Below, piece after piece: positions 4,406 through 27,229 of a stretch of DNA of 36,590 bases. A model generated the notes under the pieces. The model ran no database searches and was not told where the DNA came from. It was given only the letters and a program-made list of their open reading frames with translations. Every line of letters starts with the position of its first letter. Positions within the stretch are counted from its first letter, which is position 1. Source of the DNA: Octopus bimaculoides (lineage: Eukaryota); the NCBI RefSeq assembly GCF_001194135.2, contig NC_068988.1, positions 83,183,810-83,220,399 on the forward strand, written 5' to 3'. The position numbers and the translations under genes were made by a program.

Positions 4406-4409
4406 TGAT

Positions 4410-6270
4410 GATCAATGTTACTATCATCTATGAGCTTTCTGCTAACATATCCATGCATGGTCTTCTGCTCATGTATTGTTTTCCGATTTTAATTTTGTCT
4501 TGTAAAGTAACTGGCAGTTCATGAATGACATTACACAAAACATTTTTAATTTCATTTTCTACTCGCAAAGCAGCAATCATGATATCTTCCAATGGTTCAG
4601 CATTTTTTAAAATCAGTTTTGGTAGACAATCAGCATGTCCTAATCTCTTGGATGGTATATACTCCATCTTGAAATCATAGTTTAATAATATTGTACCCCA
4701 GCTTTGATAGTGTGGATAGGAGTTGCTTTTTTCAACACAAATATTGAAAATAATGGACGATGATCAGTCTGTAGATGAAAACTTCTACTGTGTAAAAAGC
4801 TGTAAAATTTTTTTTTTTTTTTGGCAAAAATAATCGCTAGAGCTTCTATTTCAATTTGACTATAATTTTTCTCTGCTGATATCAGAGAACATGAGTCATG
4901 AACCACTGTCTTCATGTTACCGTCTTTATATTTATGTAGCATTACTGCTCCTATACCATACTCAGAAGTGTCTGAAGCTACAACAATCTCCGCTGCAGGA
5001 TCGAAGTGTGCTGACAACATGTCAGATATTAATATTTTTTTTTATTTCATCAAACGCCTTTTGACAATTTTCCAACCAATTCCATTTCATATCTTTTTCC
5101 AGCAGATTATTCAGTGGAACCCTCACCTAATGTATATTTGGAATATAATTTTGGTTATGATTTACCAATCCTAAAAATGCTTGTACGGTCACTATATTTG
5201 TTGGAGGGGTTATATTTTTATTGTGTCTGCCCTCGATGGGTCTGGTCGACGTCCATTTCTGTCAATGATTTGTCCTAAATATCTTTTTTTCCTTGAGAAA
5301 AATTCACACTTTTCTTCACCTAAAGTAAAACCATAATTTCTAATTTTTTTCAAATACATATTTTACATGCTCTCCGTGTTGTTCCCTAGATTCAATTTTA
5401 ATGAGTATATCATCCAGATATGGAATTGCGAATTCACAGTTCACCAACATTGCATCCATAATCTGTTGAAAAATCACTAGTGTGACTTTTAAGCCAAATG
5501 GTAACTTGTTGTATTTATACAGTCCTTTATTTGTGTTAATTGTTAGATATTATAGCATTCATCGTCTACTTTAATTTGTAAATATATGTCAGAGAGATCC
5601 AATTTAGAAAATATATTGTCACTGTTTAATTTTGCAAAAATATCCTCCGGAGTAGGTAGTGGATAGTGGTATGTTTTAAGATATTTGTTTAAACCAGTGT
5701 AAAAATCAGCATACACTCTGATTTTAGTATTCTTTTTCTTAATGTACCCAGTTGGTGCTGACCATTGACTATATTCCACTTTTTGGATAACTCCAATTTT
5801 TTCTAGCCTCTCTAACTCAAAGTTTATCTGTTCTAATACTGTGAATGTTACCATCCATTTTTGTTTCAATTCTGGTCTGGTGTTTTATTTGAAACTGTGC
5901 TTTTGTTTTGGTACTCAGGCCTAATTTATCAGCAGAACTTCAGGAAAAAAATTTTAAAATTTCTTTTTCAATTCGTATGACAACTTATTTGTACTGAAGG
6001 AAAAAACTTTGTTTGTAAAACAATCCTGGATCCATATTATTTTTGTTGGTTATCTACCCACTGATATAAAGCAAATTCTTGATGTTTATCAAACTTGACT
6101 GGGTTGGTTGCATGGTGATATCCTCAATCTTCGACAGCATCCTGTTTATTGTTATTGATATTTTTACATGTGAATACAGTGATTCCTACATTATTGACAT
6201 AATGTACATAATTCCTCATCTCTTAAATATAGCATTGTACAGTGATTCCTGTTTGATTCTGATGTAGTGA
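4410..6270 (-). mobile_element. Ty3/Gypsy LTR retrotransposon pol remnant (RT, RNase H, connection), degraded
   Basis: ORFs 5543..5869 (WSAP..IRVYADF...YPLPTPEDIF..LDLSDIYLQ), 4682..5020 (ASDTSEYGIGAV..YSQIEIEALAIIFA..TDHRPL) and 4428..4667 (GHADCL). Confidence 0.9.
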
Positions 6271-6356
6271 GTTATTGTCTGGGCCTCTGGCAGATATTCT
6301 TGCTATGTATGTATGTATATAGACACATACATATGTATGTTCACACACACACACAT

Positions 6357-6530
6357 ACAGCATCATCTTCACCATCATTTTATGTCCATTTTCCATACTG
6401 GCATGGATTGGACAAGAGTTGGCAAGCCAGAGGATTGCGCCAAGTTCTATTGTTTGCTTTGGCAGCGTTTCTAGGGTTGGATGCTCTTCCTAATGCCAAG
6501 CACTTTATAGAGTGCACTAGTGCTTTTTGC
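6357..6530 (-). mobile_element. RTE 3'-UTR / RTE-tailed SINE-like fragment
   Basis: catcatc...ccatactggcatgg...ggatgctcttcctaatgcca is shared with all RTE 3' ends in the window. Confidence 0.75.
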
Positions 6531-6758
6531 ACTATATATATATCTTTATATATATATATATATATATATATATTCTCTCCCCATTTTTTTTTCTTTCCTT
6601 TTTTTTTTTTTATTCTCTCTCTATTTTTGTCCACTCAGTCCTTTTCTGTTGAAGAGCATAGGCTTGAAACGGCAAAGACTTTTCTATTCTTCCTGAGTGT
6701 TAAACTTATACAACTGCTTGTTGTTCCCTCTCTTAGCTTCCTCTTTTGTAAATTTGAA

Positions 6759-6795
<37 letters not shown>

Positions 6796-7003
6796 ATAAA
6801 AAGTCAGGAGGTATGAGAGAAGTTGAATTGTTGGTATAAACAGGATGTTCTGGTGAACTGATAGAATTGTATAATGTGAAGCATGCATATTTATGCAAAT
6901 ATGTAAACAATAACTTATTTGACATTCAAATTATTACTATGTAAAAAAAGTCTGTGAAATGGTTGTAATCCTAAAGATGTCAAGTGTTTAAATAAATATA
7001 TTC

Positions 7004-7821
7004 GGATCTTTCTGATTTGGCGGGCGCCACTTTTTATCTATGTTTTATTTAGTGTGTTTTCTACCGAAACACTTTCAAACTTTGTATACTTGTATATTTT
7101 GTGTTATAGAACAAATGAAAATTTTTGTATTCAAAGTTATTTCATGTAGAAAATTGTCGTATTTCTGTAATTTCAACCAATCACTGACGTCTATTAAGGT
7201 GAAAACAATTACTGCTGTGGTTCGTCAACAAAACGTTGTGTGGTGTAATGGGATCTTTTCCCTCGAATAAAATTAGTGCCATTGTTTGTCAACAACAACT
7301 ATCGGCGGTACTGTTATTTATGACATCGTTCGTGCGTTTGTACTGGTTTTAGCTTTAGGGTTTTAGGGTTAGGGTTACGGTTACGGTTATGAGTATTGGC
7401 AAAAATACTCATAACCCTAACCCTAAATCTAACCCTAACCCTAAAACCCGAACCCTAACCCTAAAACCCTAAAGCTAAAACCAGTACAAACGCACGAACG
7501 ATGTCATAAATAACAGTATCACCAATAGTTGTTGTTGACAAACAATGGCACTAATTTTATTCAAGGGAAAAGATCCCATTACACCGCACAACGTTTTGTT
7601 GACAATCCATAGCAGTAATTGTTTTCACCTCAATAGACGTCAGTGATTGGTTGAAATTACTGAAATACGACAATTTTAACACGAAAAAACTTTAAAAAGA
7701 TAAAATTTTCTTAATTGCACTAAGAGTAAAAGATGTTTTATATGACATATTCTACCAGTGTCCCAAGTCTGAAAGTGTTTCGTTAAGAAAACAAGTGGCG
7801 CCCGCCAAATCAGAAAGATCC
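7004..7821. mobile_element. Non-autonomous foldback DNA transposon, Merlin-like, with a central telomere-like repeat palindrome
   Basis: Perfect 28-bp TIR starting GG (GGATCTTTCTGATTTGGCGGGCGCCACT); 8-bp TSD ATATATTC/ATATATTG (6996-7003, 7822-7829); inner arms about 95% identical (7151-7397 vs 7404-7678). Confidence 0.8.
7355..7475. repeat. Interstitial telomere-like repeats, (TTAGGG)n-like facing (CCCTAA)n-like, head-to-head
   Basis: ttagggttttagggttagggtt...taaccctaaccctaa directly visible. Confidence 0.85.
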
Positions 7822-8379
7822 ATATATTGGCCTCTTATACCTCCTGACTATGTATGCCTTATATACTTCTCATGAAATAATTTCATCAATTGGATCTTCT
7901 GGGTTTCAGCTGTATGGTTACTCTGCATTACACTTCTCTGTATTATATTACTATGTGGTCAGTTAGCCAAATCCATTAGAGGAGCTCTCTGTGATAGCCA
8001 CATGATTCTCTGAATTCATATCTTAGACTTCTACATTAAACCTTAAACACTTGTTTTTCTTTATATTCACCTGTTCCCCATGTCTTACTTTCCCATACAC
8101 TCATGCAACCTCTAACCACCCACACTTTGTTCTTCTGTCCTTTCTTTTATTCACCTCATACTTTGGGGAACACTCAGACACCTCATCACTACTATCTTTT
8201 TATCTGTTCCCAGCTCCACCCCAATCTCCTCCACACATTCTTGTAAAATATGAGCACCCAAGTAGCTTCTCTATAACAAAATACCTTTTCTGCTTTGGCC
8301 CCTTCTCTCATACTTTGACTTTTCATCTCCTGGCTTTAAGCTACTCCACTTTGGGCTCATTGCCTTGAAAGCTGCATGG

Positions 8380-8575
8380 TGACTTCACATGTGCTGGTGG
8401 CATGAAAGAGGCACCCAGTATAAGCTGTAAAACAGTTGGCATTAGGAAGGGCATTGAGCTGTAGAAATTGTAGCAAAGCAGACACTGAAGCATGATGCTG
8501 TTCTTGAATCCATTGTATCAAAATCAAACTGTCCAGTGCATGCCAGCATGGAACTTGGATATCAAATGATGCCAC
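8380..8575 (+). mobile_element. RTE 3'-UTR fragment, plus orientation
   Basis: gttggcattaggaagggcat...catgccagcatggaa...tgatg is the reverse complement of the RTE tail motif. Confidence 0.7.
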
Positions 8576-8642
8576 TGATTATGGCAGCAGCACAATGAAA
8601 TGTCATTCATCTTATCAGTAAAGCAATGTTGTATTGTTTCAG

Positions 8643-8746
8643 TGAATTACGGTAACTGGTTTGAATATATGCTCCAGTGGGAGAAGGATATCAAAGACCA
8701 TCCAGAACTACCCATTTTGATAGTTAAATATGAAGATCTTAAAAAG
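8643..8746 (+). CDS. SULT: SULT plus copy, exon 3
   Basis: 103/104 nt identical to the reverse complement of 19572-19675; AG/GT intact. Confidence 0.88.
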
Positions 8747-11700
8747 GTGAAATATCTTTTGTTTACTCAAATGTGAAATTTATTTTTGTTTTTTTGNNNN
8801 NNNNNNNNNNNNNNNNNNNNAATCTTTTATAAGGCATTTTTTGTATTTCTACAAATTATATGATAAAACTGTACTAAATTTTTTATTTTATTGATATTTG
8901 TGTGTGTTTGTGTAACTGTTTTTTTCATACTTTCTTTAGGATCCAGTGAGCAATGTGGCTAAAGTGGCTGAGTTTTTAGGCCTTCCTAAAAATGACCAAC
9001 TTTTTGAAGATATTGCTGACAAATGTTCTTTTGCTAAAATGAAGGCAGTAAAACCTCTTCTACCCGAATATTTTCGAACTCCTGGTGCATCATTGTTTCG
9101 AAAAGGTCCAATCTTTGATTTTTATTTTCACCATTTCTACAAATTATCATTGTCATTATTCAATACTTGCTTGAATCAAATGAAATTTACTGAGGCAGAT
9201 TCTCAATGGCCAGATTCCAATCCTGTTGCCAATTCACCCATTTCCATTCAAAGTAAACTTTACTATAGCCAAACGTGTTTTTCATGGAAGATTGGAAACA
9301 AACATCACTTGTATGTCAGTGACACTCATTTACATCCATCACATGATGTCAAGAAAAGGGTACTCGCAAACACACACACACACACACAATGAACCTCTTT
9401 CAGTCTCTAGCTATGATATCTACTCACAAGGCCTTCGTCCACCCAAGGTTATAGTAGAAGATGCCTGCCCAAAGTGCAACACTGTAGGACTGAACTCAAA
9501 ACTACATGGTTGAGAAGCAAGCTTCAACTAATTACGATATGGATATATATATATATATATCATCATTTTCCATCCTGGCATGGGTTGGATGGTTTGACCA
9601 GGCTGGCACACTGGAAGGCTGCACCAGACTCCAGTCTGATTTGGCATGGTTTTCTATGGCTGGATGCCCTTCCTAACACCAACCATTCCAAGAGTGTAAT
9701 GGGTGTTTTTACATGCCACTGGCACAGCTGCTATTTGTGAGCCACTTTGCTTCTGTTAAGTTCAAAGTTCGAAGATCAGGCTTCACCACCTCATTCCATG
9801 TCTTCCTGGGTCTACCTCTACCACAGGTTCCCTCCACAGTTAGAGATCAGCACTTCTCTACACAGCTGTCCTCTTTGATGTGCATCACATGACCATACCA
9901 GTGCAGTCTGTCTTGCACACCACATCTGATGCCATTTATGCCTAACTTTTCTCTCAAGATGCTTACACTCTGTTGTGTGTGCACACTAGCATTGCACATC
10001 CAGCGAAGCATACTGGCTTCATTTCTTTCAAGCCTACACATATCCTTGGCTGTCACAGCCCATGTTTCCCTGACATGCAGCATGGCTGTTCGCACACAGG
10101 CAGCAAATAATCTGCCTTTCACTCTGAGAGAGAGGCCCTTTGTTGCCAGCTGAGGTAGAAGCTCTCTGAACTTTGCCCAGCCTAATCTTATTCACACAAC
10201 AATGCTCTCGGAGCATCCACCTCCACTACTAACTTGGTCACCTAGATATCAGAAGCTATCTACTACCTCTAGCTTGCCCCCCTGGCAGTTGATGGAGTCT
10301 ATTTTCTGCACATTTTCAGCGTTTATTGTAACTGTGCGTCTTCCACATAGAAAAGCTAGTTTCCTTGTTAACCTTCCTCTGATATTGTATCCAAAGCTAA
10401 CACTTTTATGTGTCGAAAGCTTACACTGGGTGCATGATATAGAGTTTCTACCTACACCTTTTCTACAGATCGAGCAGAACCATCTACCTGAAGGGATTTG
10501 TGATTTGTCTGTCTTCCTACTTACTAAGACTTTTGTTTTTGCTAGGTTAACTCTAAGGCACTTTGATTCTAGACCTTGCTTCAATACCTGAAACTTCTCT
10601 AGTTCAGATAGTGATTCAACTATAAGAGCAAGGTCATCAGCATAGTGGAGCTCCCAGGGGCAGCCTGTCTTGAATTCCTCTGTTATTGCCTGGAGGACTA
10701 TGATGAACAAGTGGGGGATGAGCACTGAACCTTAGCGAACCCCTACTTGTAATCTGAATTCTATGCTGTACTCATTGGCAACCCTTGCCTTACTGGTAGC
10801 ATCCCTGTGCATAGCTTGTACAGCTCTCACCAACCACTTGTCTATCCCTAGTTTCCACATTGAACACCAGATAAGCGATTAGGGGATCCAGTCAAAGGCT
10901 TTCTCTAAGTCAACAAAGGCCAAGTACAGAAGTTTATCTTTGGCTATGTATTTCTCCTGCAGCTGCCTTACCAGAAATATAGCATCAGTGGTACTTATCC
11001 CTGGCACAAAACCAAACTGCATCTCATCTAGACTAACTCTCTTCCTAATTAGCTGGGCTATGACTCTCCCTGTGACTTTCATCACCTGATCCAACAATTT
11101 GACACCTCTGTAATCATTTCTATCCAGAGCATCACCTTTATTTTGTGGCAGTTGACTATGGTGCTGCTACACCAGTCATTGGGTATGACTTCTTTGTGAA
11201 CCACCTGATTTACAATACAGGTGACTAGACCATAACCCACATCACAAGATATTTTAAGCATCTCATTAGTGATTCCTGATGGGTTGAGGGCTGTTCCTGT
11301 CATCATATCCTTAATTGCTTTATCTACCATGGAACTGCCGATTTGGGTAGCCAGTCGCTCAATTGGGTCAACATTTGGCAGACTCTCCTACTCCCAGTCA
11401 TTTTCTATGTTCAGCAGTCTTTCATAATGGCATTTCCAAGCCTCTTTCTTTGCAGAATCATTACATGCAAGTGCACCATCATCCATGCAGACACATTTTT
11501 ATCCTATGACATCATGATTTTCTCTCATGCACTGTTTTGCGATCTGAAACACTCTCCACCTTACCCCTTGGATGCAACATGTATCAACATGCCTCTGTTC
11601 AAGCATCTCAACAATCTCGCTATACCTACCTTTCAATGTGCCTTCATTGATAATGCCAACTCTGAAAACTGGGAAAGGGATGGGAAGGAGTAATGTTATT

Positions 11701-12653
11701 CGGAACCTGAAAGTAAGGTTTTCATAATCATTTGATAACAGACATGTTACATAAGTTGTTCTCTTGCTTTAACCTATCATCATTCAAGCCAGTTAAAGAT
11801 TGTTGCCCCTATGTTGGGGGAGTGGGAGGAGTGCAATGTAAGCGTTGTAAATATAAATGTTTTGAGCATTGTAAATATAAGCGTTACTGCTGCAAATATA
11901 ATAGGTCAGTGTTAAAGTTAAGTAAATGAGCTGCTATTGGTTAGTCCTTACGTATAGACAGAGAGAGGTAGGTGGTTTGAAGGAATGGAGGTATGCAAGT
12001 TTTCTGGTACAGAAGTGAGGCAGAGCCCTGTCGGCATTTCTGGTATAAGAGAAGAGATTTCCAGTATTGGTGGTGGGGTTGGGCATGGGTGGGCGCATTG
12101 CAAACAAGCAATATCACGAACAAGCAATGGCCAGCATCACCACATACAGGAGATAGAGAGAGAGAGATAGCAATAAGGGACTTGAGGCCTTTTGCAAAGC
12201 AAGGATCATAGCAAAGTATGGAAACACGAGGGGTATGTATGACAATGTGAAAAGTTATTGAAAAATTTAAAGAATTATAAGCAACGTCCAGTATTGCCAC
12301 ACAGAAGAGATATAAAGTGAGATAGCAGTAAGGAACTTGAGGCCTTTAGTGAGGGGAGGATCATAGCAAAGTATGGAAACATGAGGGGTATGTAATATGA
12401 TTTGTAAAAGTTACTAAAAAATTTAAAGAATTATAAGCCACTAAAGTTATTTTAACTGAAAATACACATGTAAGCATGTTAGTATTACAAGTTAGATAAA
12501 AGAATGATGAGTGATTAAAAGCTAGAGAAATTTCCTAAACTTAGCTAGGCATTTTGTGTGGTATGATAGAATCAACATACAGCAGAGCAGGGATGTGAAA
12601 CTTCAGAGGACTGGAGGATTCTTTAAATAGTTTACAACCGGAGGACAGGAGGG

Positions 12654-12691
<38 letters not shown>

Positions 12692-12729
12692 NNNNNNNNN
12701 NNNNNNNNNNNNNNNNNNNNNNNNNNNNN

Positions 12730-12778
<49 letters not shown>

Positions 12779-14089
12779 TTAACAAAGGTACGTACCTGTA
12801 TATTTACACTTTTCTAGAAGTGACATGAAAACAATATATAAGTTTAGTTTATTGTATTTAATTCATTCTATTAAATTGCCTTAAACCATATTTTAACATC
12901 TCCTATCTATAGGTGGTTATATGTGAAGATGAAAGGTCAATCTTTTTCTTCATTTGATTTAAGAAGTGTATTATAACTTTTGTTTATATTAACTTAAACC
13001 AAATACCAGGCCAGATTCCCTGCAGTTTTTGTTCTGGCTTGAAATTTTGTGTTCAAATCCCATTGTAGCCCACTTGGGTGGTAGACTTAAGCCATTGCTC
13101 AGTGTAATATCAGCACTAGTTTTCCTGTTTGACAATAGCTTTTTCCCTCCCTCTTCTAAGCTTCAGAGACCCTATAAAGGTCATGGGCACAGCCTCCTCT
13201 TTTGAGTAACAGATAAAAGAAAAAACCCATATATTTGCACTTTTTTAAATGTATGAATGTAATTAGCACCAGCAGAATACACGGCTTATTTCAATATATT
13301 AATTAATTAACTCTGTTAATACATTTCCCTAAATCTTATCACTTCTAGTCTGGAGATGGTTATATGTATGCATGAAATGCCAGTCTTCCTTGTCCTCTTT
13401 AACATAGGAAATGTATTATAACCTCTGTCTATATTAACTAAATCTCTCAGTAACAACAATTCAACATTAGACCAGATACCTTGTGTTATTTGATTCTGCT
13501 CTTTGCATTCTCAGTTCAAATCCCATCATAGCCTACCATCTTCCATCTCCCCTTTCTCCAAGTTTCAGAGGCACTTAAAGCATCAAATGTTCTACCTTCC
13601 CTCCTAGCTAGACTGAAACTGTGTAGAAACCAGTTTGATGAATTGTACCTGTAATCCCATGGTACAGTTTTGTCACACACAATGTCACATTGATTCTGCC
13701 TGATAATTACATTAATGGTACATGTGTCTGTGGAATACTCAGTCACTTTTACATTAATTCAATGAGTAAGCAATTCAGTTGATTGAACAGTTGAATCCGT
13801 AGTATAAAACACCAATAGAGAATCATCAATTCATCCAGCTGTTTTGCATTGACCACATCACAGTATTTAATGTTACTCTGATTGGCAACTGATTTCATAT
13901 TAGAGAAGGTATATAAAAGACAGCTTCTACTTATTATAGACATGAAATTCTTACAGCCAAAGTATCTTCTATTTTACAGGTGTTGTTGGAGACTGGAAGA
14001 ATTGGTTCACAGTTTCTCAAGAGGAAAGATTCCAAGTGGAATGTGACAAATTTGACAAAACGTCCACGTTGTTTAGTACAAAGTACTAA
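8643..14089 (+). CDS. SULT: Second SULT paralog, 3' part only (exons 3-5: 8643-8746, 8940-9105, 13980-14089); exons 1-2 not in window
   Basis: Exon sizes (104/166/110) and phases match the minus copy, frame is intact, and no exon-2 homolog was found in 1-8642. Confidence 0.85.
8940..9105 (+). CDS. SULT: SULT plus copy, exon 4 (DPVSNV...GASLFRK-G)
   Basis: ORF 8946..; acceptor CTTTAG; weak donor GTCCAA. Confidence 0.88.
9385..9520 (-). mobile_element. tRNA/CORE-type SINE 5' half
   Basis: The reverse complement matches 26345-26485 (gttcagtcc B-box, gggcag..tcttctactataacc). Confidence 0.7.
9556..11690 (-). mobile_element. RTE (BovB-like) LINE, 5'-truncated and decayed, in intron 4 of the plus SULT
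   Basis: RT motifs QFGFVPG..TTDAIF, AFVDLEKAFD, ELHYADDL, LRVNLAKTK, RLHWYGHV; 3' tail next to (TA)n. Confidence 0.93.
12163..12440. repeat. Direct repeat of about 122 bp, 2 copies, period about 157
   Basis: gagatagca.taagg.acttgaggcctt...ggatcatagcaaagtatggaaaca.gaggggtatgta...aaatttaaagaattataagc occurs twice. Confidence 0.85.
13980..14089 (+). CDS. SULT: SULT plus copy, last exon (VVGDWKNWFTVSQEE...STKY*)
   Basis: Acceptor TTTTACAG, intact frame and TAA stop; 7 nt differ from the minus copy. Confidence 0.88.
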
Positions 14090-14589
14090 ATATCACTTTA
14101 ATGTTACTATGACTTTTTCATAGACATCTTTATACCACATTTGTTAGTATGCTTAATAGCTTTACTGAAATCTGAAAAAATCGCCTAATTCTTATATACC
14201 TTGAACATATAGTAATATCTACCATTTCAAATTAGTTCTATTTTCATATCATGGACAAATTCTGGGGACTGCATTTAATTCCAAAGATTTTATTTTTTGT
14301 ATAGTTTATATAGTTGGATGCCATTCCTGACACCAACTACGTTACAGCTGGCAAAAATGAGCTGTACCTGTAATTCAAAGGACCAGCCTTGTCATATTCT
14401 GTATCATGCTGAATTTTCCTGAGAACTACATTAAGGGCGCACATGTTGTGGAGTGCTCAGCCACTTGCATGCTAATTTTATGAGTAGACTATTCCTTGGA
14501 CTGGAACAGTTGTCATTATAACTGACAGTGCTATTTAATACAGGTATACGTGCACACACACACACACACAATGTTTTGATGGTTTGTAA

Positions 14590-15185
14590 TCATCATCATC
14601 ATCATCATCATCATCGTTTAACGTCCGCTTTCCATGCTAGCATGGGTTGGACGATTTGACTGAGGACTGGTGAAACCGGATGGCAACACCAGGCTCCAAT
14701 CTAATTTGGCAGAGTTTCTACAGCTGGATGCCCTTCCTAACGCCAACCACTCAGAGAGTGTAGTGGGTGCTTTTACGTGTCACCCGCACGAAAACGGCCA
14801 CGCTCAAAATGGTGTCTTNNNNNNNNNNNNNNNNNNNNNNNNNNNNNNNNNNNNNNNNNNNNNNNNNNNNNNNNNNNNNNNNNNNNNNNNNNNNNNNNNN
14901 NNNAAGAGCCAGTCCAGGGGCACTGGCAACGATCTTACTTGGCTTGCCGGGTCTTCTCACGCACAGCACATCTCCAAAGGTCTCGGTCAGTAGTCATCGC
15001 CTCGGTGAGGCCCAATGTACGAAGGTCTTGCCTCACCACCTCAGCCCAGGTCTTCCTGGGCCTACCTCTTCCACGGGTTCCCTCAACTGTTAGGGTGTGG
15101 CACTTTTTCACGCAGCTATCCTCATCCATTCTCACCACATGTCCATACCAGCGCAATCATCTCTCTTGCACACCACAACTGATGC
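14590..15185 (-). mobile_element. Young RTE 3' end (RT C-terminus plus 3'UTR with (GAT)n tail), contains a gap
   Basis: ORF 14935..15156 MRWYGHVVRM..GRGRPRKTW; (CAT)n at 14591; CpG-rich. Confidence 0.9.
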
Positions 15186-15424
15186 TTGTGGTGTGCAAGA
15201 GAGACGATATAAATAATATAATTTTAGAATTGAAAAATAAAATAATTTCAATGATTTATTGTTGAAATAATGTGATGTTTATTTTCTTTTTTTATTTGTG
15301 AACTTGAGTTTTGTTTCCTAAAAAATATTTTTTCATTCTTTTTAAGGTGATTAATTATGGATATGTAGTGACCTTACCTATGTGTGTGTGTGTGTGGGAG
15401 GTATATGTGTATATGTGTGTATTA

Positions 15425-17320
15425 TATATCATCATCATCGTTTAACATCTGTTTTCCCTGCAAGCTTGGGTTGAATGGTTTGATTGGAGCTGGTAAGGCC
15501 AGGCACTGCACCAGGCTCCATTATCTGTTCTGGCATGGTTTCTACAGCTGGATGCCCTTCCTAATGCCAACCACTCCACAGAGTGTACCAGGTACTTTTT
15601 ATGTGGCACCAGCACCAGTGCTTTTAATGTGGCACCAGTATGAGTGCTTTTTATGTGAGGCCAGCAACTGTATCAATTCTGCTGTGGTAGATGGATCTTC
15701 TTGAATACAGCAATGTACCAGATATCTCAGTCCTTTGTCATCTCCTTCATAAGGTTCTGTGTCTTGAGATTGGCCTTCAATACTTTGTCCTATGTTTTCC
15801 TGGGCATCTCTCTTCCACAAGTTTCATCAACTTTAAGTGATCAGCATTTCTGTTTGCAACTGTCTACATCCATATGCATCACATGACCAAACTAGTGCAT
15901 TTCTCTCTCTTGCACACTACAACTAATCCCTCTTATTCCCAACTTTTTCCTCAAAACACTACCCCTCTGTTGCACATGTACAGTGACATTGCACATCCAG
16001 TGGAGCATACTAGCTTCATTCCTCTCTAGCCTTGACGTGTCTTCTACATTCAGGGCCCACATCTCACTACCACGTAACAATGCTGTTTGCATACTTGCAT
16101 TATACAGTCCTCCATTCACTGAGAGAGAGAGAGAGACCTTTGGTTGCTAACTTTGATAAAAGTTCTCTGAATTTTCTCTATCCTATTCTTATTCTAGTGA
16201 TTACACTTTCTGTGCATCGTCCCCCACATCTAATTAGGTCTTCTAGGTAGCAGAAATTATTCACTACCTCTAAAGAACATCTAGGAAATTTGAGAAAATT
16301 GATTCCCTGAGTATCTGTAGTTTTTATGGCTCCTGTGCATCTTCCACATACAAACACTACCTTCTCTGATAACCTTCTTATTATTTTACTGCACTTTGTG
16401 TGTGCTCATAGCTTGCACTGAGTACACTGTATAGAATTCCTGCCTACACCTTTTCTACATATCAAGGGTCCTGTCCATTTTCTTGCTTTCTAGAATCTTA
16501 GTCTTTGTTAATTTAACCTTAAGGCCCTTTGATTCCAGGTTTTGCTTTCACATTAGGAATTTCTTTTCTAGTTCTGTTACACAACCTGCTCAAGATCATC
16601 AGCAGCCAGTCTTAAATTCTTTTATTATGGCCTGGAGGATGATGACAAATAGGAGGGGACTGAGAACCAAACCCTGAGGAATGCCTACCTGTACACTATA
16701 TTCATCACTATACTCATAGTTAACTCTCACCTTACTGTCAGAACCTTTGCACATGATGTGTATAGCTTTTACAAGCCACTTGTCTACCCCTAGCTTCCTC
16801 AGAGCTCACCATATCATACAACAGGGTACTCTGTCAAAGGTTTCCTCTAAGTCAACAACACCAAGTACAATGGTTTATTGGCCAAATACTTCTGCAGTTG
16901 TCTAATTATAACAATTGCATCAGTAGTGCTTCTTGGCTCAAAGCCAAACTGCATTTCATCTAATCTGATTCTGCTGCCTTAACTTTCATGACCTAGTCCA
17001 GCAACTTGATGTCTCTATAATTACTTCTATCTTAGGCATCTCCCTTACCCTTGTAGCAACTGACTATAATACTGCTACACCAGTAATTGGGAATGACACC
17101 TTGAATAACCTGATTAGCTATATGGGTGACCAAACTGTATCCTCCTCTGCCAGATATTTTAAGCATTTCAGTGAGGACACCCGATGGGCCAGGGATTTTC
17201 CCTGTCTTCTTATCCTTAATTGCCTTATCTATCATACTGCTGTCAACATGAATAGCTGGTCCTTCTGTTGCATTCACATATGGGAGATTCTTTCTCCCAC
17301 ATAATAACACTTTCACTCTT
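15425..17320 (-). mobile_element. Older RTE LINE, decayed, between the two SULT 3' ends
   Basis: ORFs 15892..16119 (RLERNEASML) and 17032..17316 (GPSG..EMLK..CYKGKGDA). Confidence 0.9.
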
Positions 17321-17449
17321 CTTTCTTTTTGGAATCACTGGTTGCAAGCATTCTATTATCCATATGTACATACTTCTCTTCTACAACATTTTGGTTCTCT
17401 TGACACATTGCCTAGCAACCTGGAACACCTCAAGTCTCTGATCTTCACA

Positions 17450-17494
<45 letters not shown>

Positions 17495-17602
17495 NNNNNN
17501 NNNNNNNNNNNNNNNNNNNNNNNNNNNNNNNNNNNNNNNNNNNNNNNNNNNNNNNNNNNNNNNNNNNNNNNNNNNNNNNNNNNNNNNNNNNNNNTTTTAA
17601 AA

Positions 17603-17639
<37 letters not shown>

Positions 17640-17644
<5 letters not shown>

Positions 17645-17795
17645 GGGTTCAAATTCTGCCAACATTGACTTTGCCTTTCATCCTTTCGGGGTCAGTAAAT
17701 TAAGTAGCAGCTGAGTACTGGGGTCAATGTAATCAACTTTCCCCCCTCCCCCAAATTTCAGGCCTTGTGCCTTTAGTAGAAAGGATTATTATTGT
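17640..17795 (+). mobile_element. Nin-domain-like tRNA SINE fragment
   Basis: gggttcaaattc B-box followed by gcctttcatcctttcggggtc..taaattaagta; homologous to 30710-30850. Confidence 0.65.
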
Positions 17796-17939
17796 TATTA
17801 CTAAACTAACAATTTTAAAACATATTCTACATATATAGGAATTAAGGGATTTTTCAGGTATCAATAAAAATATCAAGCATATTAACACATGCAGTATAAA
17901 AATGTCTGTGAGAAAGCCATAATAACACTAAAGTGATAT

Positions 17940-18049
17940 TTAGTACTTTGTACTAAACAACGTAGATTGCTTGTCAAATTTGTCACATTCCACTTGGAAT
18001 CTTTCATTTTGAGAAACTGTGAACCAATTCTTCCAGTCTCCAACAACAC
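17940..18049 (-). CDS. SULT: SULT minus copy, last coding exon (VVGDWKNWFTVSQNE...STKY*)
   Basis: Acceptor TTTTACAG; GDWKNWFTVSQNE motif; TAA stop. Confidence 0.92.
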
Positions 18050-19151
18050 CTGTAAAATAGAAGATACTTTGGCTGTAAGAATTTCATGTCTATAATAAGA
18101 AGCTGTCTTTTATATACCTTCTCTAATATGAAATCAGTTACATATGAGAGTAACATTAAATACTGTAATGTGATCAATACCAAAAAGTTAGATGAAGGGA
18201 TGGATGGTTCTCCACTGATTTTTATGATGTGGAAGATTTAGTTGTTTGATCAAGTTAATTACTTGCTCATTGAATTAATGTGTAAATGATTGAGTATTCC
18301 ACAGACACATCATCATTATCATAATTCTCAAGCAGAATCAATATGACATTGTGTGTGACAAGACTATATCTTGGAATTACAGGTACAATCCATCCAACTG
18401 GTTTCTATACAGTTTCAGTCTGGCTAAGAGGTAAGGCAGCACCTTTGATGCTTTAAAGGCCTCTGAAACTTGGGAGAGAGATGGAGAAAGGAAGGTAGGC
18501 CATTATGGGATTTGAACTCAAAAAGCAAAGAGTTGAAGCAAATACAAGGCATCTGATCTTGTTTAGTTATATTAGACTCATTTAATCATTTTAATGCTGA
18601 TCTGTTCTCACTGAGAGATTTAGGGAGGGTATAATACATTTTCTGGACATCACATGTTGGTTGTAAATGAGCATCAATATCATTCAAGAGATGTTGTTTC
18701 TTTCCAATCTTCCATGAAAAACATGTTTGACTATAGGAAATATTACCTTACTTGGAAACAGGTGAAGATTGGTGGTAAGAAGGGCATATGGCTATAAGGA
18801 ATCTATCTTAACAAATTCAATTTAACCCATCCGAACATGGAAAAACAATTGTTTAAATAATAATGATGATGATGATGGTGATGACGACAACAGTGATGAT
18901 GATTATTATTATTATTATTATTATTGAGTGAGAGAGCAACGCATGCCATCAAAGTGACACTAGGTTACATATATACAAAGCCCAATATACCCATCATGAC
19001 TATCTGTCTGATAAGGGTACACCAGGCACATGCATCACAACCATATATGCACGGCACGGTGATTTCATGTCAAGATAAACAACGCATAACCTTGCAGGTG
19101 GGGCCCAGTTAGAATTTTCTTCAGGTTGAGTAGCCCATCCTGCTCAAAACG

Positions 19152-19193
<42 letters not shown>

Positions 19194-21960
19194 CATCATC
19201 ATTATCATCATAATGAAAATATAAATCAAAGATTGTACCTTTACGGAGAAATGATTCACTAGGAGTTCGAAAAAATTCAGGGTGCGGAAGTTTTGCAGCC
19301 TTCATTTTGTCAAAAGTACATTTGTCAGCAATATCTTCAAAAAGTTGGTCATTTTTAGGAAGGCCTAAAAACTCAGCCACTTTAGCCACGTTGCTCACTG
19401 GATCCTAAAGTAAATTTGAAAAAAACATTACACATGCATACACTATAAACTATCAGCAAAGTAACTATTTTAGTATGGTTTTAACATATAAGTTGTAGAA
19501 ATATACATACATACATACACTATGAAACAGCAAAATAAATTTCAGTTTTGAGTAAACAAAAGATATTTCACCTTTTTAAGGTCTTCATATTTAACTATCA
19601 AAATGGGTAGTTCTGGATGGTCTTTGATATCCTTCTCCCACTGGAGCATATATTCAAACCAGTTACCGTAATTCACTGAAACAATACAACATAGATTTTC
19701 AGTGAGTGTGACTGTATGTGTACTTATTCATCTATGTGTGAGGATATNNNNNNNNNNNNNNNNNNNNNNNNNNNNNNNNNNNNNNNNNNNNNNNNNNNNN
19801 NNNNNNNNNNNNNNNNNNNNNNNNNNNNNNNNNNNNNNNNNNNNNNNNNNNNNNNNNNNNNNNNNNNNNNNNNNNNNNNNNNNNNNNNNNNNNNNNNNNN
19901 NNNNNNNNNNNNNNNNNNNNNNNNNNNNNNNNNNNNNNNNNNNNNNNNNNNNNNNNNNNNNNNNNNNNNNNNNNNNNNNNNNNNNNNNNNNNNNNNNNNN
20001 NNNNNNNNNNNNNNNNNNNNNNNNNNNNNNNNNNNNNNNNNNNNNNNNNNNNNNNNNNNNNNNNNNNNNNNNNNNNNNNNNNNNNNNNNNNNNNNNNNNN
20101 NNNNNNNNNNNNNNNNNNNNNNNNNNNNNNNNNNNNNNNNNNNNNNNNNNNNNNNNNNNNNNNNNNNNNNNNNNNNNNNNNNNNNNNNNNNNNNNNNNNN
20201 NNNNNNNNNNNNNNNNNNNNNNNNNNNNNNNNNNNNNNNNNNNNNNNNNNNNNNNNNNNNNNNNNNNNNNNNNNNNNNNNNNNNNNNNNNNNNNNNNNNN
20301 NNNNNNNNNNNNNNNNNNNNNNNNNNNNNNNNNNNNNNNNNNNNNNNNNNNNNNNNNNCGCCAGTAAGGTGACGCTGGTAACGATCACACTCAAATGGTG
20401 CTATTTACATGCCACCAGCACGGAAGCCAGACAGCTGCTCTGGCAATGATCATGCTCGGACGGTGCTGTTAGTGCTCCACTGGCACAGGTGCCAGTCATC
20501 GAATTTGGTTCAGTATTTCTGTGTATTTGCCTGTTAGTGTACAAGTTAATCTGTTTCTGTATGAATATATTATCTGTGCCTGTATGTCTTTATATTTTGC
20601 CTCTTCTTTTTAAATTTTGCCAACCCTTTATTCCTATTCTATATAAACTGACTTTGCTTTACTTTGAGAAAATACTTAAGCATTGAAACCATTTTACCAT
20701 TGTCAAGTATTTATTTATTTATATAAATTTTATTCACTCACTCTTTCTTGTATTGAGCCTGTTTCTTTTGGTTATTGTCTTCTCAGATATAATTCATAAA
20801 CCAATCATTATAATTCATTCACTCCTTTCTCAAACGTGTCCTTTTAACTATATCTCAAATATGCAGAAACAATATTTAGACATTTCCAGGAAGAATAATG
20901 CCATTCCAAATGGACAAGTTTATCACAGAAAGACACTGACTTCATTAAACATTAAACAAATTAAATGATGAAACTACATCCTGTAAACTCTTTTCAGAAA
21001 CGAAACTTTAAGGATGAGTTATATAAGTTAGTTTAATGCATTATATGGGGGGAAACAGTCTTTTCCACCAAGATCTACACAAGACCAAAGATATATAGAA
21101 TTCTAAGGCGATTCATATTCATTCAAATAAAACAGTTAATTATTGCCATCTTGATTTTTAAAAATCATACCATCCATTTATCTGTGATACATTAACTAAA
21201 GATCACAAAAAACTAGACTAGAACTTAATAAATTTGACAGGATCAACTACCAGAACATAAAAAGAACAACCAAACTACATGTTAGAAACCATACCTAACT
21301 CTTGGTTATAAATTGATATGTCATAAAACTCATTTTAACAAAAACCCTTCTATTTGCCTGATTAACTCTTCTAAATATATTATTTGTCACCTTCACAAGA
21401 TTATATTAGACAGGATTCTCAAAACCTTCAACTGAAACTTTGGGAAAATATCCAGGCTGTAATTCACTGTTTTAACTTTTTCCTTCATAAAAACTGTATT
21501 ACATTCATTCGGTTTAATGTATATAAGCACTATATCTCAATTCAAGCTGTGTTATGCAATAAAACTATGGAATTTGTAAAATCCTTTTTCACATATTTAA
21601 CTGTCAAATACTGATATTATTTTATTAACTACAAAAACAGTAATTAACTTGGAATATTTTCTTTGGGTTAGAAAAGCTTCTCAAATGCCTTTGAACATTA
21701 GCATAAGAGTTACTGATTTAGCAGGGCGTCTAGATATTGTGGGGGGGGGGCGACCTGCTAGGAAGGATATGTAGCACTCAATACAGGACCCCACCAACTC
21801 CCAGAAATCTTGGCATTAAGAGGCTATCTTTCAATATACAAAGGTATCTTGACTTAAAAAATGGATTCTCTTTTATGCTAGCCACTTTAGAGACACCAAA
21901 TAATTCAATGTAGTTGATGGAAAAGGGAATCAACAGAACACTCCTGAAAATGTATGTATA

Positions 21961-22003
<43 letters not shown>

Positions 22004-25000
22004 GTATAAATGTATATAAAGATAAAGTGATTGATAGAAAAATTTTATTGTCTCTTCTTTGAGTCTTGAGCTTCTCAGCCATTGTTGGGGTCTTCACTTT
22101 GTCTATTTCTTTTCTGTTTGGCTTAACCCAATGTTTGCTATGTAAAGGGCTTTTCTTGCCATCATTTTATCATGATACTTCGTTGTATCAGTTTTAGTTT
22201 GGATTTAAGTTGTTTCTTCTTTTTTTTTATAATTGTCAGGTATTATGACTTCTTTCCTTGCTTCTGAATTAGGTATTTCTGTAATCCTATGGAGGTTATT
22301 TTATAATAGTTTTCTAGCTGTATAAGGCCTCTACCATCTTCAATACGTTGTATATATAACCTTTCTATGTCAGATTCTGGATGGTGCATCCTAAATTCTG
22401 TCATTATTTTTTTTTGTTTTCTTGTCTCGTTTGGCTAGTTCATTTAGAGTTCAATTAAGAATATTGTAACTGTAACTTATAATTAAAATTCCTGAGTAGA
22501 ACTTATTATTACCTCCGTCATTGAAACTATTTTGAATGGTGACTTTATTAACTTTGGCTTGTATTAGATAAGGATAAACTATTTATTACCGTTACTAAAT
22601 TTTCTTCAGTCACCTTTACATTCCGTAACTACCATTGTGATCGATCAGGTACTGGACAAGGATTCTGGATTACTTTTCCGTTTTTTTTGCTTAATATTTG
22701 AGAACGGTCAGGTTCATTTTTAGTATTCTCGTCTGTGAGAGCATTCGAGTTTATTTCAGATATTCTCATATTAAAAATCATCTCTGGCTAATCATTGAGA
22801 GGATGTTGGTGTTGCCTTGGCAGAGGTTTGCACTCTCTGAGTTCTCTTGTTATTATTATCATTGGGGAGAATTCACAAAAAACAAAAGATGAAGACAGGT
22901 GGTGTACACAACAAACAGATGTATTAGTTTAACGCTCAGGAAGTGAAAAAGTCTTTAATGTTTCGAACCTACGCTCTTCCACGGAAAGGAACACAGAAAG
23001 AAACAAGGAAAGGAAATAAAGAATGTGTAGTGGCTAGCGATCATTCGCCATGATAGATCGCTAGCCACTACACATTCTTTATTTTCTCTCCTTGTTTCTT
23101 TCTGTGGAAGAGCGTAGGCTCGAAACATTAAAGACTTTTTCACATCCCGAGCGTTAAACTAATACATTTGTTTGTTGTCTACACCACCTGTTTTCGTCTT
23201 TTGTTGTTATTATACATTCATGTGGTTGCACCAGTTGATCCTGTCTCCTCTCATTACCCAACGAATTTTTACACCTTCTACACTGGACTATTCTACCTGA
23301 ACTTTCTATTCTCGTACACTTCAGCTGCACCTCTCCTGCCCATGGATTACACTGGACTCCTCTATTATTATCATTGTTTGGTTTAGATGTGTGTCATGTT
23401 AGCTCCTAAGGATTTGTTGAATTTTGTTGGAAATAAATTTACTCTCTTTAATCTTTGTTAGAGTTTTTTTGGGGGTGAAGAGGGAAAATCCCAAAAATAA
23501 CCTAAAGGGTACAATTATTGTAATATTTTTCCTTTTTTCTTTTTTTTTTTTTGTTTGTTTCTTGTTAGAATTATCCAATACCATGCAATCAGTCTGTCAA
23601 GGGTGCACCATCCCCTTCTGTATGTACTGACACTATAACCATTATTGCAGAAATTAAAGTCTTTGAGGGGCATCCTACAAAACCTGATGCAGATGATCTG
23701 TATTTGTCTATTCAGATGACATCATCATTATTGTGTCAGACACAAAACACATTGAGGTGATCAGTACTATCCTAAGGGAATACAAGGTGGTGATAGAAGC
23801 AAAAATTAACCAGAAGTCATTGAGCCTGCTGCTCATCACCTAGACAGGCAGATCCAATCCATCCAACAGTGTTGTTGGGTGCTGGACGAACAGACCAGTT
23901 AAATTGCTTAGGGCTTGGTTTGGTCCAGAATTCCACAGCATTTATTGACCCTCAGAAAATACATCTTCCACCACTTCACATTAAACTTGGCCTTAAGAAA
24001 ATTTCTTGAAGAGTATAGATCATCAAGGTAGTGATTTCCAATATTCAAAGGATAAATTCAAAGGGATACTGACAGATGCTAAGCTAGAAGCTGCAGTTTT
24101 CACTGGACCACAGATCTGCAGTGTCATCTATGACCCATTGTTTCCATCTAACCTAAATGAGGATGAAGTAGGAGCATAGACACCTTTTGTTGATGTTGTC
24201 AAAAAATTTTCTTAGAAACCACAGAAATGAAAACTACTGTGAATGTACTGAAAACATGCTTAAATCTAATGAAAATAGGGGATTCAGAAAGTCTTTGGAA
24301 ATGCATTTTTTACATTCTCATCTTGACTTCTTTCCAGCCAACTTTGGGGCTGTTAGTGATAAATGAGGTGAGCACTCCTACCAACAAAACTCAGGTAATT
24401 TCAACCCAAATTTGATGGGGGATTGTTGTTGGTTCGTGCCGAAGGAGAGCTCATCATCCTACAAGTGACAGAAGAAGAGGAAACACCAAAGTTTCACTTA
24501 AAAACAGAAAGTTGCCTTTCAATAGTAACAACAAAATTCTAATGTGCTTTGTGTGGATGGTTGAGTGCAGAGGTGATAGCTCTGCCAACAGAATTCTACT
24601 GTCTGTCTTAAGCCAGGAATTATTTCTGTCTGTCTTAAGCCACTAATTATTTGTGTATGCTTAACATAAAATATGGAAAAGTAGCTTAGACAGCTTTCCT
24701 AATAGAAGTGTGCAAGAAAAATAAAATGAAAAATAGAGGTTTTGAGATACACAGATCTGAAATTAGCATCAGAAATTTGGTAAGAATCAGTGGTTTACAG
24801 ATCTGTAACAAAAAAAAGTTGAAATTTGTTGCCTAGTGTAATCAATACAAAATCAAAACCCACAAATCTACAAGAGAAAGAAGAAAATGAAACAGTATAC
24901 TAAACAATTAATAGAGGAAAATGTCCTAAATACTCAACTGAGTTATTTGGAAGACAGAAAAAGTAATAACAGTATCAGCTTTTACATGATTCTAAGTATT

Positions 25001-26490
25001 GTTGTCCATTTATATAGCAACTATGTGAAGACAAACCTTTTATCAATGCAAAATGAACAGATGGAATTTTTGAGCCAAGAAAAAATGTAGAAGGGAAAAC
25101 TTTGTAAGAACCAAAAGCAGTTTTTATCATGAGATAAAATCAAGATGTTAAAAAGAAACAGTATATATCACTGCTTATGAAAAATATAGAAACAAACTAA
25201 ATTTTCCCTTGCATCAAACAAGCTCTCCAGGGCATATCAGGAGAAATTCTCTCAACTGCTAAAAGTAAATTATATGGCACAATTTGCAGTGGATTAAAAA
25301 CTAAAAATACTGCCAAAGCATGAGCTTAAATTTTAAAAAATATACCTCTGATTATACATTTGTGCCACAGTATATAGGTTGAACAAATACAAAACAATGG
25401 AAAAAACTTAGATCTATAGCTAGTCATGATTTTTGTATTACAGTAAGGACAAGTGGTCAAAATGGGCTAACAAAGGTGAGATGTTGTCAGAGGACATCAA
25501 AATGGATTTGCAAGTCCTAATGTTCCTTGAAAGTCACAGAAACATACCAGAGCTATGTCCAGTAAAATGTGCTGAGACAAAGGGTGTGAGATTAATGATA
25601 CAGGGTAGAAAGCCAAGTTATATAATTGTTAGAGTAAAAAGCTCTGAAGAACTGGGAAGACTAAGCAAAAGCAAAAAAGAGGACATCATAAAAAATGAAA
25701 ATCAACAGCAACAACAAAAAGAATAACAAACCCCAGTTTTCAGAGGATCGTCAGCCAAAACTTCAGGGATAATAAAGAAAATATCTTTAGGCTTAATCAC
25801 AAACAGATGAACAAATATCTCATCCCTTGGCAGCATCTTCATTATGTGATAAGGAAGAAATAATTACAGACAAAAATACAAAGAGAAAAAAAGAAAAAAA
25901 TCTAAATACAACAATGAAAATAGCTGAGGAGAAACAGTTTCTCTTAAATCTCTCCTCAAGAAAATGCAGATGAAGATAAACTAAGATTCATTGTTCTTTG
26001 AGAATGAAATAGTTACAGGTCAAAATTAAGCAGCAGTGATGCCACAACTTACTATAAAAGTTATAATGATACAAACATGATTAGAATTCAGAATATAAAC
26101 AACATGCAAAAGATAGATTAAAATTTAAAATATTATTTCAAACTTTAAAAAAATTGCTTTCAAGAAATTGTTGTCTTTCAGCACCAGATGCCTCAAAAAT
26201 TGCTTACTGGTTAGGTGAACTTAATTTAAACTAACCAGAACATCTTTCATGCATTTCTTCAACTTATATCTTGTTTTAATTATTGTTTTACTGTGTTGTT
26301 ATTTATTTCCATGCAAATTATTTCCAGGCGTAGGAGTGGCTGTGTGGTATGTAGCTTGCTTATGAACCACAGGTTCCGGGTTCAGTCCCACTGCATGGCA
26401 CCTTCGGCAAGTGTCTTCTACTATCGCCTCGGGCTGACCAAAGCCTTGTAAGTAGATTTGGTAGATGGAAACTGAAAGAAGCCCATCGTA

Positions 26491-26533
<43 letters not shown>

Positions 26534-26878
26534 NNNNNNNNNNNNNNNNNNNNNNNNNNNNNNNNNNNNNNNNNNNNNNNNNNNNNNNNNNNNNNNNNNN
26601 NNNNNNNNNNNNNNNNNNNNNNNNNNNNNNNNNNNNNNNNNNNNNNNNNNNNNNNNNNNNNNNNNNNNNNNNNNNNNNNNNNNNNNNNNNNNNNNNNNNN
26701 NNNNNNNNNNNNNNNNNNNNNNNNNNNNNNNNNNNNNNNNNNNNNNNNNNNNNNNNNNNNNNNNNNNNNNNNNNNNNNNNNNNNNNNNNNNNNNNNNNNN
26801 NNNNNNNNNNNNNNNNNNNNNNNNNNNNNNNNNNNNNNNNNNNNNNNNNNNNNNNNNNNNNNNNNNNNNNNNNNNNNN

Positions 26879-26923
<45 letters not shown>

Positions 26924-27193: not shown

Positions 27194-27229
<36 letters not shown>

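Follow-up and report, generated by a model that had tools for sequence, protein, structure and literature searches.

The sulfotransferase genes and the loci compared

We analyzed a stretch of 36,590 nt from Octopus bimaculoides, hereafter the window (GCA_001194135.2, CM046608.1, approximately 83,183,810-83,220,399), which carries exons of two related predicted sulfotransferase (SULT) genes, A and B, on opposite strands. The window has 37% G+C and eight N runs, and protein searches assigned it to Octopus. The assembly consists of an earlier Illumina shotgun assembly on top of which Hi-C scaffolding was applied (PMC9068888).

Gene B is complete in the window, and its spliced coding sequence translates exactly to XP_014784698 (P0125). 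The plus-strand exons of gene A correspond to the 3′ end of the "sulfotransferase 6B1" isoforms P0126-P0128, and the window holds only exons 3-5. Exons 1 and 2 were absent from window positions 1-8600 in a tblastn search and were located 8.2 and 3.2 kb upstream of the window start (L008 17956 and 22722), so that a partial duplicate origin of gene A was ruled out. The exons are listed below.

8643-8746, plus strand: gene A exon 3 (AG/GT splice sites; translation as in P0127)
8940-9105, plus strand: gene A exon 4 (AG/GT splice sites)
13980-14089, plus strand: gene A exon 5, coding part including the stop codon (AG/GT splice sites)
32383-32548, minus strand: gene B exon 1, coding part (AG/GT splice sites)
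27552-27875, minus strand: gene B exon 2 (not homogenized; clusters with its orthologs)
19572-19675, minus strand: gene B exon 3 (AG/GT splice sites)
19239-19404, minus strand: gene B exon 4 (AG/GT splice sites)
17940-18049, minus strand: gene B exon 5, coding part including the stop codon (AG/GT splice sites)

The Sulfotransfer_1 domain (PF00685) was matched at full length by P0125 (gene B, 198.6 bits), P0127 (gene A, 194.6 bits), and P0129 (a third paralog, C, 196 bits), with a cut-off of 22. The nearest solved structure was human SULT1B1 (3ckl, E = 1.5e-41). When aligned to it, the octopus proteins kept the Lys of the 5′-phosphosulfate loop (FKAGCHW vs. PKSGTTW), the catalytic His (lnnHL vs. 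vktHL), the 3′-phosphate motif RNxxDxxxS (RNprDiatS vs. RNakDvsvS), and RKGxxGDWKN (RKGvvGDWKN vs. RKGtaGDWKN). By domain and motif content, A and B are thus predicted to be bona fide cytosolic sulfotransferases: they share with known SULTs a full-length domain of 289 aa, the motifs that bind 3′-phosphoadenosine 5′-phosphosulfate (PAPS), and the catalytic His, and differ in the loop FKAGCHW, which is PKSGTTW in SULT1B1. The nearest named cephalopod homolog was a sulfotransferase of Watasenia scintillans (P0010, 56% identity). The labels "SULT1B1" and "SULT6B1" are automatic names and make no statement on orthology.

Related loci were fetched through exact-protein look-ups and fell into four lineages, A, B, C, and D, which are given here with the prefixes bim, sin, and vul for O. 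bimaculoides, O. sinensis, and O. vulgaris. The set comprised sinA (L003), sinB (L005), and sinD (L004); vulA (L010), vulB (L006), and vulC and vulD (both L002), the last four from a long-read assembly; and the third O. bimaculoides paralog, bimC (P0129, record L009, 83.287-83.300 Mb). The introns of window 2939-17494 were collinear with the sinA locus (87-92% identity) and those of window 17653-36071 with the sinB and vulB loci (89-93% identity), which makes the orthology of A and B secure. A literature search returned no paper on gene conversion in octopus sulfotransferases.

Near-identical blocks in genes A, B, and C

The preliminary description of the window had reported near-identical exons within diverged introns in A and B, and all its counts on A-B identity were reproduced. 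Exon 3 differed at one of 104 nt (GAT/GAC, synonymous), with identity extending 17 nt upstream (8626-8642) and 24 nt downstream (8747-8770). The first 87 nt of exon 4 also showed a single synonymous difference (AAT/AAC), and the last 79 nt of this exon showed 18, so that approximately 11 of 27 residues differ. The 93 nt preceding exon 5 were the same in both genes apart from a 3-nt indel (13927-13929); within exon 5, the first 41 nt were identical and were followed by seven differences. The background was diverged, with 72% identity in intron 3 (36 of 129 nt differing), 77% in distal intron 4 (97 of 428), and approximately 75-88% in the 3′ untranslated region (UTR). Comparison of the window with itself placed the inverted homology at 8620-9160 vs. 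19698-19182 (81% identity), 9156-9357 vs. 18845-18639 (71%), and 13458-14218 vs. 18568-17812 (83%). Near-identity between A and B was limited to three blocks of approximately 90-145 nt.

Numbers of differences between gene pairs in exon 2 (counted over 321 nt) and exon 3 were as follows.

bimA-sinA: exon 2, 23; exon 3, 7
bimB-sinB: exon 2, 16; exon 3, 6
bimC-vulC: exon 2, 25; exon 3, 8
bimA-bimB: exon 2, 36; exon 3, 1
bimA-bimC: exon 2, 44; exon 3, 2
bimB-bimC: exon 2, 33; exon 3, 1
sinA-sinB: exon 2, 29; exon 3, 11
vulA-vulB: exon 2, 31; exon 3, 13

Paralogs were therefore closer to each other than to their orthologs within exon 3 (1-2 vs. 6-8 differences), and the flanks followed orthology. 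The trees built for single segments were incongruent in the same sense (neighbor-joining, bootstrap values in parentheses). Exon 2 resolved into ortholog clades (88-99%). In the exon 3 block, bimA, bimB, and bimC grouped together (66%), as did sinB, vulB, and vulC (98%), and ortholog clades received 0%. Intron 3 gave an A clade (100%) and a bimB-bimC group (99%), the last 79 nt of exon 4 gave ortholog clades (57-100%), the tail of intron 4 with the start of exon 5 joined bimA to bimB (88%), and the rest of exon 5 with the 3′ UTR returned to ortholog clades. The exon 3 block and the intron 4/exon 5 junction thus clustered by species, unlike exon 2, the 3′ part of exon 4, and the 3′ UTR, which clustered by ortholog. 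Clustering by species is what the conversion model proposed in the preliminary description predicts for converted blocks.

A GENECONV-type permutation scan (own implementation, 5000 permutations, mismatches disallowed, 417 polymorphic sites) found bimA-bimB runs that significantly exceeded chance. The run at 8631-8704 comprised 16 concordant sites bounded by discordant sites at 8625 and 8737 (global P = 0.0016), and the run at 13906-14020 comprised 13 concordant sites (global P = 0.013). Runs were also significant for bimA-bimC (8631-8695, global P < 0.0002), for bimB-bimC (several runs within 8583-9035, global P ≤ 0.005), and for vulB-vulC (global P = 0.0004). Because the last pair comes from a long-read assembly, the process appears to act in the cluster independently of the short-read assembly. 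With exon 3 as an a priori unit, the bim side had none of nine lineage-unique changes (P = 0.004), compared with 16 of 25 in exon 2. The 145-nt block carried 13 lineage-unique changes in the sin and vul lineages and none in the bim lineages. A test of lineage asymmetry over the blocks of the preliminary description (Fisher's exact test, P = 1.4e-9) was discarded as circular, since those blocks had been chosen for identity between A and B. In the B/C quartet, sites grouping genes by species outnumbered those of the alternative pattern 34 to 1.

Interlocus gene conversion, or concerted evolution, within the SULT cluster is the likely explanation of the A-B-C mosaic, as judged from these sequence comparisons. 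The tracts and the segments next to them are listed below.

8626-8736, plus strand: tract I in gene A (gene B counterpart, 19692-19582; same sequence in paralog C)
8940-9026, plus strand: tract II, 5′ part of exon 4 (gene B counterpart, 19404-19318)
9027-9105, plus strand: 3′ part of exon 4, paralog-specific, ortholog clades (gene B counterpart, 19317-19239)
13930-14020, plus strand: tract III, end of intron 4 and start of exon 5 (gene B counterpart, 18099-18009)

In the region of tract I, bimB and bimC had the state of the A/D lineages at 8689, 8692, 8695, 8740, and 8768, unlike sinB, vulB, and vulC, and bimA had the B/C state at 8650, 8674, and 8686, unlike sinA, vulA, and D. Together with the A-type states in tracts II and III (8943-9006 and 13958-14020), these sites suggest that exchange went both ways and involved three genes. 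Position 8704 was A in bimA, bimB, and bimC only and T, G, T, or C elsewhere; at the tract edge, 8737 remained lineage-diagnostic. In tract II, bimB and bimC had A-lineage states at 8943, 8944, 8948, 8949, and 9006; the tree signal was weak there, and most of the stretch was conserved in every lineage. In tract III, bimB had the A-type state at 13958, 13990, and 14020, and position 13964 was A in bimA and bimB only, the tract not being shared by C. Its edges were the 3-nt indel at 13927-13929, which stayed specific to the B lineage, and the lineage-specific sites 14021 and 14023. Derived states that A and B have in common and that are confined to O. bimaculoides paralogs were found at two sites, 8704 (where C has it too) and 13964, a number no higher than the homoplasy level of the strict A-B quartet.

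From 9027 onward, each gene followed its own lineage in exon 4. The segment 9027-9105 aligned to the SULT1B1 loop just before the RKG of the RKGxxGDWK motif, which we take to be the substrate-gating loop of SULT1 enzymes, and the abrupt end of tract II at 9027 coincided with the start of this loop-coding segment. Selection on the loop may have halted the tracts at this position and kept the loop paralog-specific. The genes would accordingly evolve as mosaics, with the exons that encode the core homogenized and the loop before RKGxxGDWK distinct in each paralog.

Paralog C, approximately 85 kb away, had the same homogenized exon 3 and 5′ part of exon 4 as A and B. Over approximately 0.84 kb of sequenced DNA, beginning at the end of intron 2 and running through exon 4, bimB and bimC were 96-98% identical; elsewhere, their identity was 72-82%. 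This B-C tract (L007 21887-23338; window 19211-20662, including the gap 19748-20358, vs. L009 20557-21809) was much longer and more recent than any A-B tract. Older tracts of the same kind, 88-90% identical, were observed between vulB and vulC.

These observations suggest the following course of events. The cluster would comprise four or more cytosolic sulfotransferase paralogs, among them A, B, C, and D, and would predate the split between O. bimaculoides and O. vulgaris/O. sinensis. In the O. bimaculoides lineage, short nonreciprocal exchanges, presumably recombinational and spanning approximately 60-110 nt, would have taken place between A and B/C. Those between B and C, whose introns can still be aligned, would have covered 0.8 kb or more. 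The exchanges would have homogenized exon 3, the first 66-87 nt or so of exon 4, and the intron 4/exon 5 junction, and would have left introns, exon 2, and the loop-coding 3′ part of exon 4 with their paralog identity. The A-B/C tracts are probably short because A offers only short islands of high identity to B and C, separated by unalignable introns and retroelements. The direction of some tracts can be proposed from the states given above; at a few sites, the alternative is conversion from D in the sister lineage.

Part of the A-B mosaic is ancestral. Upstream of approximately position -20 of exon 3, the A-lineage type of intron 2 could not be aligned to the B/C/D type in any of the three species, so that the 17-nt edge, which the preliminary description had taken as a conversion edge, is an ancient structural boundary. 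In intron 3, the 24 nt next to exon 3 were conserved in every A, B, and C gene of all species. At the other end, the tail of intron 4 was conserved in four lineages, so that the 93 identical nt before exon 5 are for the most part family-wide and ancestral rather than newly converted. The two conserved stretches are given below.

13916-13979, plus strand: end of intron 4, conserved in A, B, C, and D of three species
13916-14115 (A) and 18113-17914 (B): near-invariant stretch of intron 4, exon 5, and 3′ UTR (also in L002-L006, L009, and L010)

The last 62 nt or so of intron 4, exon 5, and approximately 25 nt of the 3′ UTR were almost invariant across A, B, C, and D in the three species. For example, vulD and vulB differed at 2 of 105 nt in exon 5 and at 54 of 321 nt in exon 2, and the introns of lineage D were otherwise unalignable to those of the other paralogs despite the conserved intron 4 tail. 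This family-wide conservation could represent a conversion hotspot or an unrecognized function or constraint at the nucleotide level.

Such conservation bears on the explanation that there was no conversion and that purifying selection on exons and splice-proximal introns, including constraint at synonymous sites, kept the blocks identical. The blocks were also the least diverged ones between sinA and sinB, and the conserved intron 4 tail with exon 5 (in four lineages, including D) and the conserved 24 nt at the start of intron 3 (in A, B, and C) would be expected under this explanation. However, constraint cannot make genes within a species more similar to their paralogs than to their orthologs, as in exon 3; nor does it account for the 13 lineage-unique changes in sin/vul vs. 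none in bim or for the permutation result of P = 0.0016. No signal of RNA structure that would limit silent sites was obtained: the conserved silent-site and intron regions had no Rfam match, and folding gave z-scores of +0.98, -0.19, and +0.32. Constraint at the RNA level (an editing duplex or an intronic noncoding RNA) as the cause of the silent-site and intron conservation was consequently rejected as unsupported. Selection without conversion thus seems to us highly improbable.

Several points weigh against conversion between A and B. The genes sinA and sinB were also little diverged in the three blocks (15 of 145, 6 of 87, and 7 of 113 nt), which implies that part of the mosaic represents old constraint or older conversion. 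In the strict quartet of bimA, bimB, sinA, and sinB, two sites grouped the genes by species vs. three with the homoplasy pattern; the A-B signal thus comes from the lack of sites diagnostic of the paralogs and from an asymmetry between lineages rather than from many shared derived states. At several sites, polarizing the direction of conversion and the lineage in which it occurred would require a further outgroup. In addition, the O. bimaculoides sequences come from a short-read assembly without independent reads or transcripts, and such an assembly may merge sparse differences between paralogs, so that a count of one difference may be an underestimate.

Taken further, this last point would make the blocks an artefact, in which Illumina reads of A, B, and C were co-assembled in a de Bruijn graph and variants were popped like allelic bubbles, inflating identity. 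The combination of short-read shotgun and Hi-C data, contig breaks near the blocks (gap 8797, 26 nt after block I in A; gap 19748, 55 nt before it in B), and the lack of independent O. bimaculoides transcripts or contigs of these genes in the protein collection searched are compatible with it. Nevertheless, each block lies in one contig and is anchored on both sides in paralog-specific intron, and lineage-diagnostic differences persist at the tract edges (8737, the indel at 13927-13929, and 14021/14023). Merging would require true copies that were approximately 97% or more alike (an estimate), which is still above ortholog identity, and tracts of the same kind occur between vulB and vulC in the long-read assembly. 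We therefore give an assembly artefact very little credence.

Gene conversion between loci is known from gamma-globin and opsin pairs. A further precedent is provided by the primate class I alcohol dehydrogenase (ADH) genes (PMC3409193). The octopus genes share with such clustered families short tracts in which paralogs are closer than orthologs, inside flanks that follow orthology; tracts that are detectable by GENECONV-type run statistics; and tracts that are centered on exons, bidirectional, and spread over more than two cluster members. They differ in locus and taxon (a cephalopod cytosolic SULT cluster), in the very short A-B tracts (approximately 60-110 nt) that end at the loop-coding part of exon 4, and in being read from a single genome rather than from population data. 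The phenomenon is thus an ordinary, textbook one, of which the octopus SULT cluster is a new instance. One consequence is that per-gene trees of the SULT cluster mislead unless split by segment, since the grouping is by species in exon 3 and by ortholog in exon 2; this is relevant to the annotation and to evolutionary studies of cephalopod detoxification and sulfation genes.

Gene order and orientation

In the deposited assembly, A (plus strand) and B (minus strand) are convergent, with 3.85 kb between their stop codons. The preliminary description had explained the mosaic by an old inverted, tail-to-tail duplication, a palindrome whose arms are homogenized by intrachromosomal arm-to-arm conversion. 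The convergent arrangement would fit this explanation, as would the tract at 13930-14020 (with the A at 13964), which is common to A and B and not shared by C. The layout depends, however, on a single feature.

17495-17594, no strand: assembly gap of 100 N that alone joins the A side physically to the B side

This gap was the only one of 100 N among 27 gaps in the approximately 150 kb inspected. It fits a fixed-size Hi-C join, the fixed-size convention being itself our presumption. To its left, the window was collinear with the downstream flank of sinA/vulA up to 17494; to its right, it was collinear with the downstream flank of sinB/vulB from 17653. Collinearity with the relatives across the A-B junction thus breaks in the 100-N gap. 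None of the four gaps examined (8797-8820, 12692-12729, 14819-14903, and 17495-17594) touches an exon. The gap at 8797-8820, in a T-run of gene A intron 3, has a real length of approximately 0-2 nt as judged from the orthologs. The gap at 12692-12729 falls within a microsatellite-flanked, O. bimaculoides-specific insertion of 1.5 kb in intron 4, outside the reach of synteny, and that at 14819-14903, downstream of A, belongs to a repeat insertion specific to O. bimaculoides and has sequence collinear with O. sinensis on either side.

In the two relatives, A follows B on one strand at a distance of 23-40 kb. In O. sinensis, sinB (31.730 to 31.7195 Mb) is followed by sinA (31.6796 to 31.6519 Mb), and in O. 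vulgaris, vulB (42.916-42.927 Mb) is followed by vulA (42.950-42.979 Mb), with C and D in the opposite direction on the far side of B. The O. bimaculoides assembly has the same B-C relation as the relatives and an inverted A. Since the cluster is tandem or divergent in the relatives, the origin of the duplication was not inverted. Moreover, DNA 10-14 kb upstream of bimA exon 1 was orthologous (85-93.5%), in the same orientation, to DNA 8-10 kb downstream of vulB; ancestral B-to-A intergenic DNA (more than 14 kb) therefore remains attached upstream of bimA.

Arm-to-arm gene conversion in Y palindromes was reportedly described by Rozen et al. in 2003, and the palindromes of human and ape Y chromosomes are P1-P8. 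As deposited, the octopus locus resembles these in having two inverted copies, a short spacer, and identical blocks. It differs in that its arms are 71-84% identical rather than near-identical, that only approximately 1.3 kb can be aligned and this homology is split by a retroelement of some 4 kb, that a third, nonpalindromic copy carries tracts too, and that the inverted adjacency itself depends on a 100-N gap and disagrees with both sister genomes. Paralog C, which stands in another orientation relationship, shares the homogenization of exon 3 and of the 5′ part of exon 4 to the same degree, and exons 1 and 2 are not homogenized. The presence of the exon 3 tract in C, so far away, argues for concerted evolution across the cluster rather than for homogenization between arms. 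The palindrome model fails two defining features, near-identical arms and arm-specific homogenization, and we consider it highly improbable. Gene conversion was hence the part of the earlier proposal that was retained, and the old inverted duplication and the arm-to-arm mechanism were the parts that were not.

The block of at least 40 kb that includes gene A (region CM046608.1 83,148,467-83,201,303; L011 and L008), one breakpoint of which falls in the 100-N gap, is either truly inverted or mis-oriented in scaffolding, and we judge the chances of the two to be roughly even. Its left breakpoint was not found; the 9 kb further to the left contained only matches between transposable elements (TEs) and no second 100-N gap. 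Two candidates for the breakpoint were rejected. The reverse match of 83,150,154-83,151,191 to L003 48363-49423 involved TE copies and starts exactly at a 3-kb insertion absent from O. vulgaris, and a match to L005 21825-22417 was absent from O. vulgaris and partly repetitive. The evidence for conversion is independent of the layout and stands whether the orientation of A and B is real or a scaffolding error.

A further scenario assumes that 40 kb or more were genuinely inverted in the O. bimaculoides lineage, that the resulting convergent configuration produced the tract found in A and B only at the intron 4/exon 5 junction, and that selection on the loop encoded by 9027-9105 keeps the enzymes functionally distinct. 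As a whole it is rather unlikely; if true, a young "proto-palindrome" would be forming inside a detoxification-gene cluster from an ancestral tandem B-to-A pair. More generally, an apparent palindrome in a Hi-C-scaffolded short-read assembly hangs here on one 100-N join that is at odds with two long-read sister genomes.

Other sulfotransferase loci and intronic repeats

Three observations were made on other genes of the family. The O. vulgaris protein P0004 (L002 10001-62190, OX597821.1) is a chimeric gene model, in which exons 1-2 of vulC (10001-12906) are fused to exons 3-5 of vulD (52599-62187), 34 kb downstream. In a more distant O. bimaculoides SULT paralog (L001 4734-11255; CM046608.1, 93.78 Mb), the exon 3 equivalent contains an in-frame stop (VSYGN*FQYM, L001 8811-8864), and the annotation divides the gene into two protein fragments of 167 and 140 aa; the locus could be a pseudogene, or the stop could stem from faulty assembly beside a gap of 491 N. 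In sinB exon 4 (L005 18477-18656), the genomic sequence encodes FFRNG in place of the RKG with which the conserved RKGxxGDWK motif begins in all other family members; either a PAPS-binding residue has truly been replaced or the long-read consensus is wrong.

The introns contain several decayed repeats, including the following one in gene A.

9747-11554, minus strand: decayed non-long-terminal-repeat (non-LTR) retroelement in gene A intron 4, shared with sinA

Further copies of this repeat, approximately 1.8 kb long, were found at 15767-17428, 28394-30400, and 31591-32290. ARAGORN found no tRNA-derived short interspersed element as a source of the repeats. Decayed open reading frames of intronic retroelements lie at 4682-5020, 10249-10725, and 30001-30357, all on the minus strand; they include an LTR-type RNase H fragment (PF17917, 71 bits) and, at 10249-10725, an RVT_1 fragment of the 1.8-kb repeat that was below the cut-off. 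In addition, two intronic inverted repeats that fold back on themselves, at 6995-7828 (approximately 830 nt, 78% complementarity) and 22878-23208 (approximately 330 nt, 85% complementarity), are probably foldback elements or elements resembling miniature inverted-repeat transposable elements.

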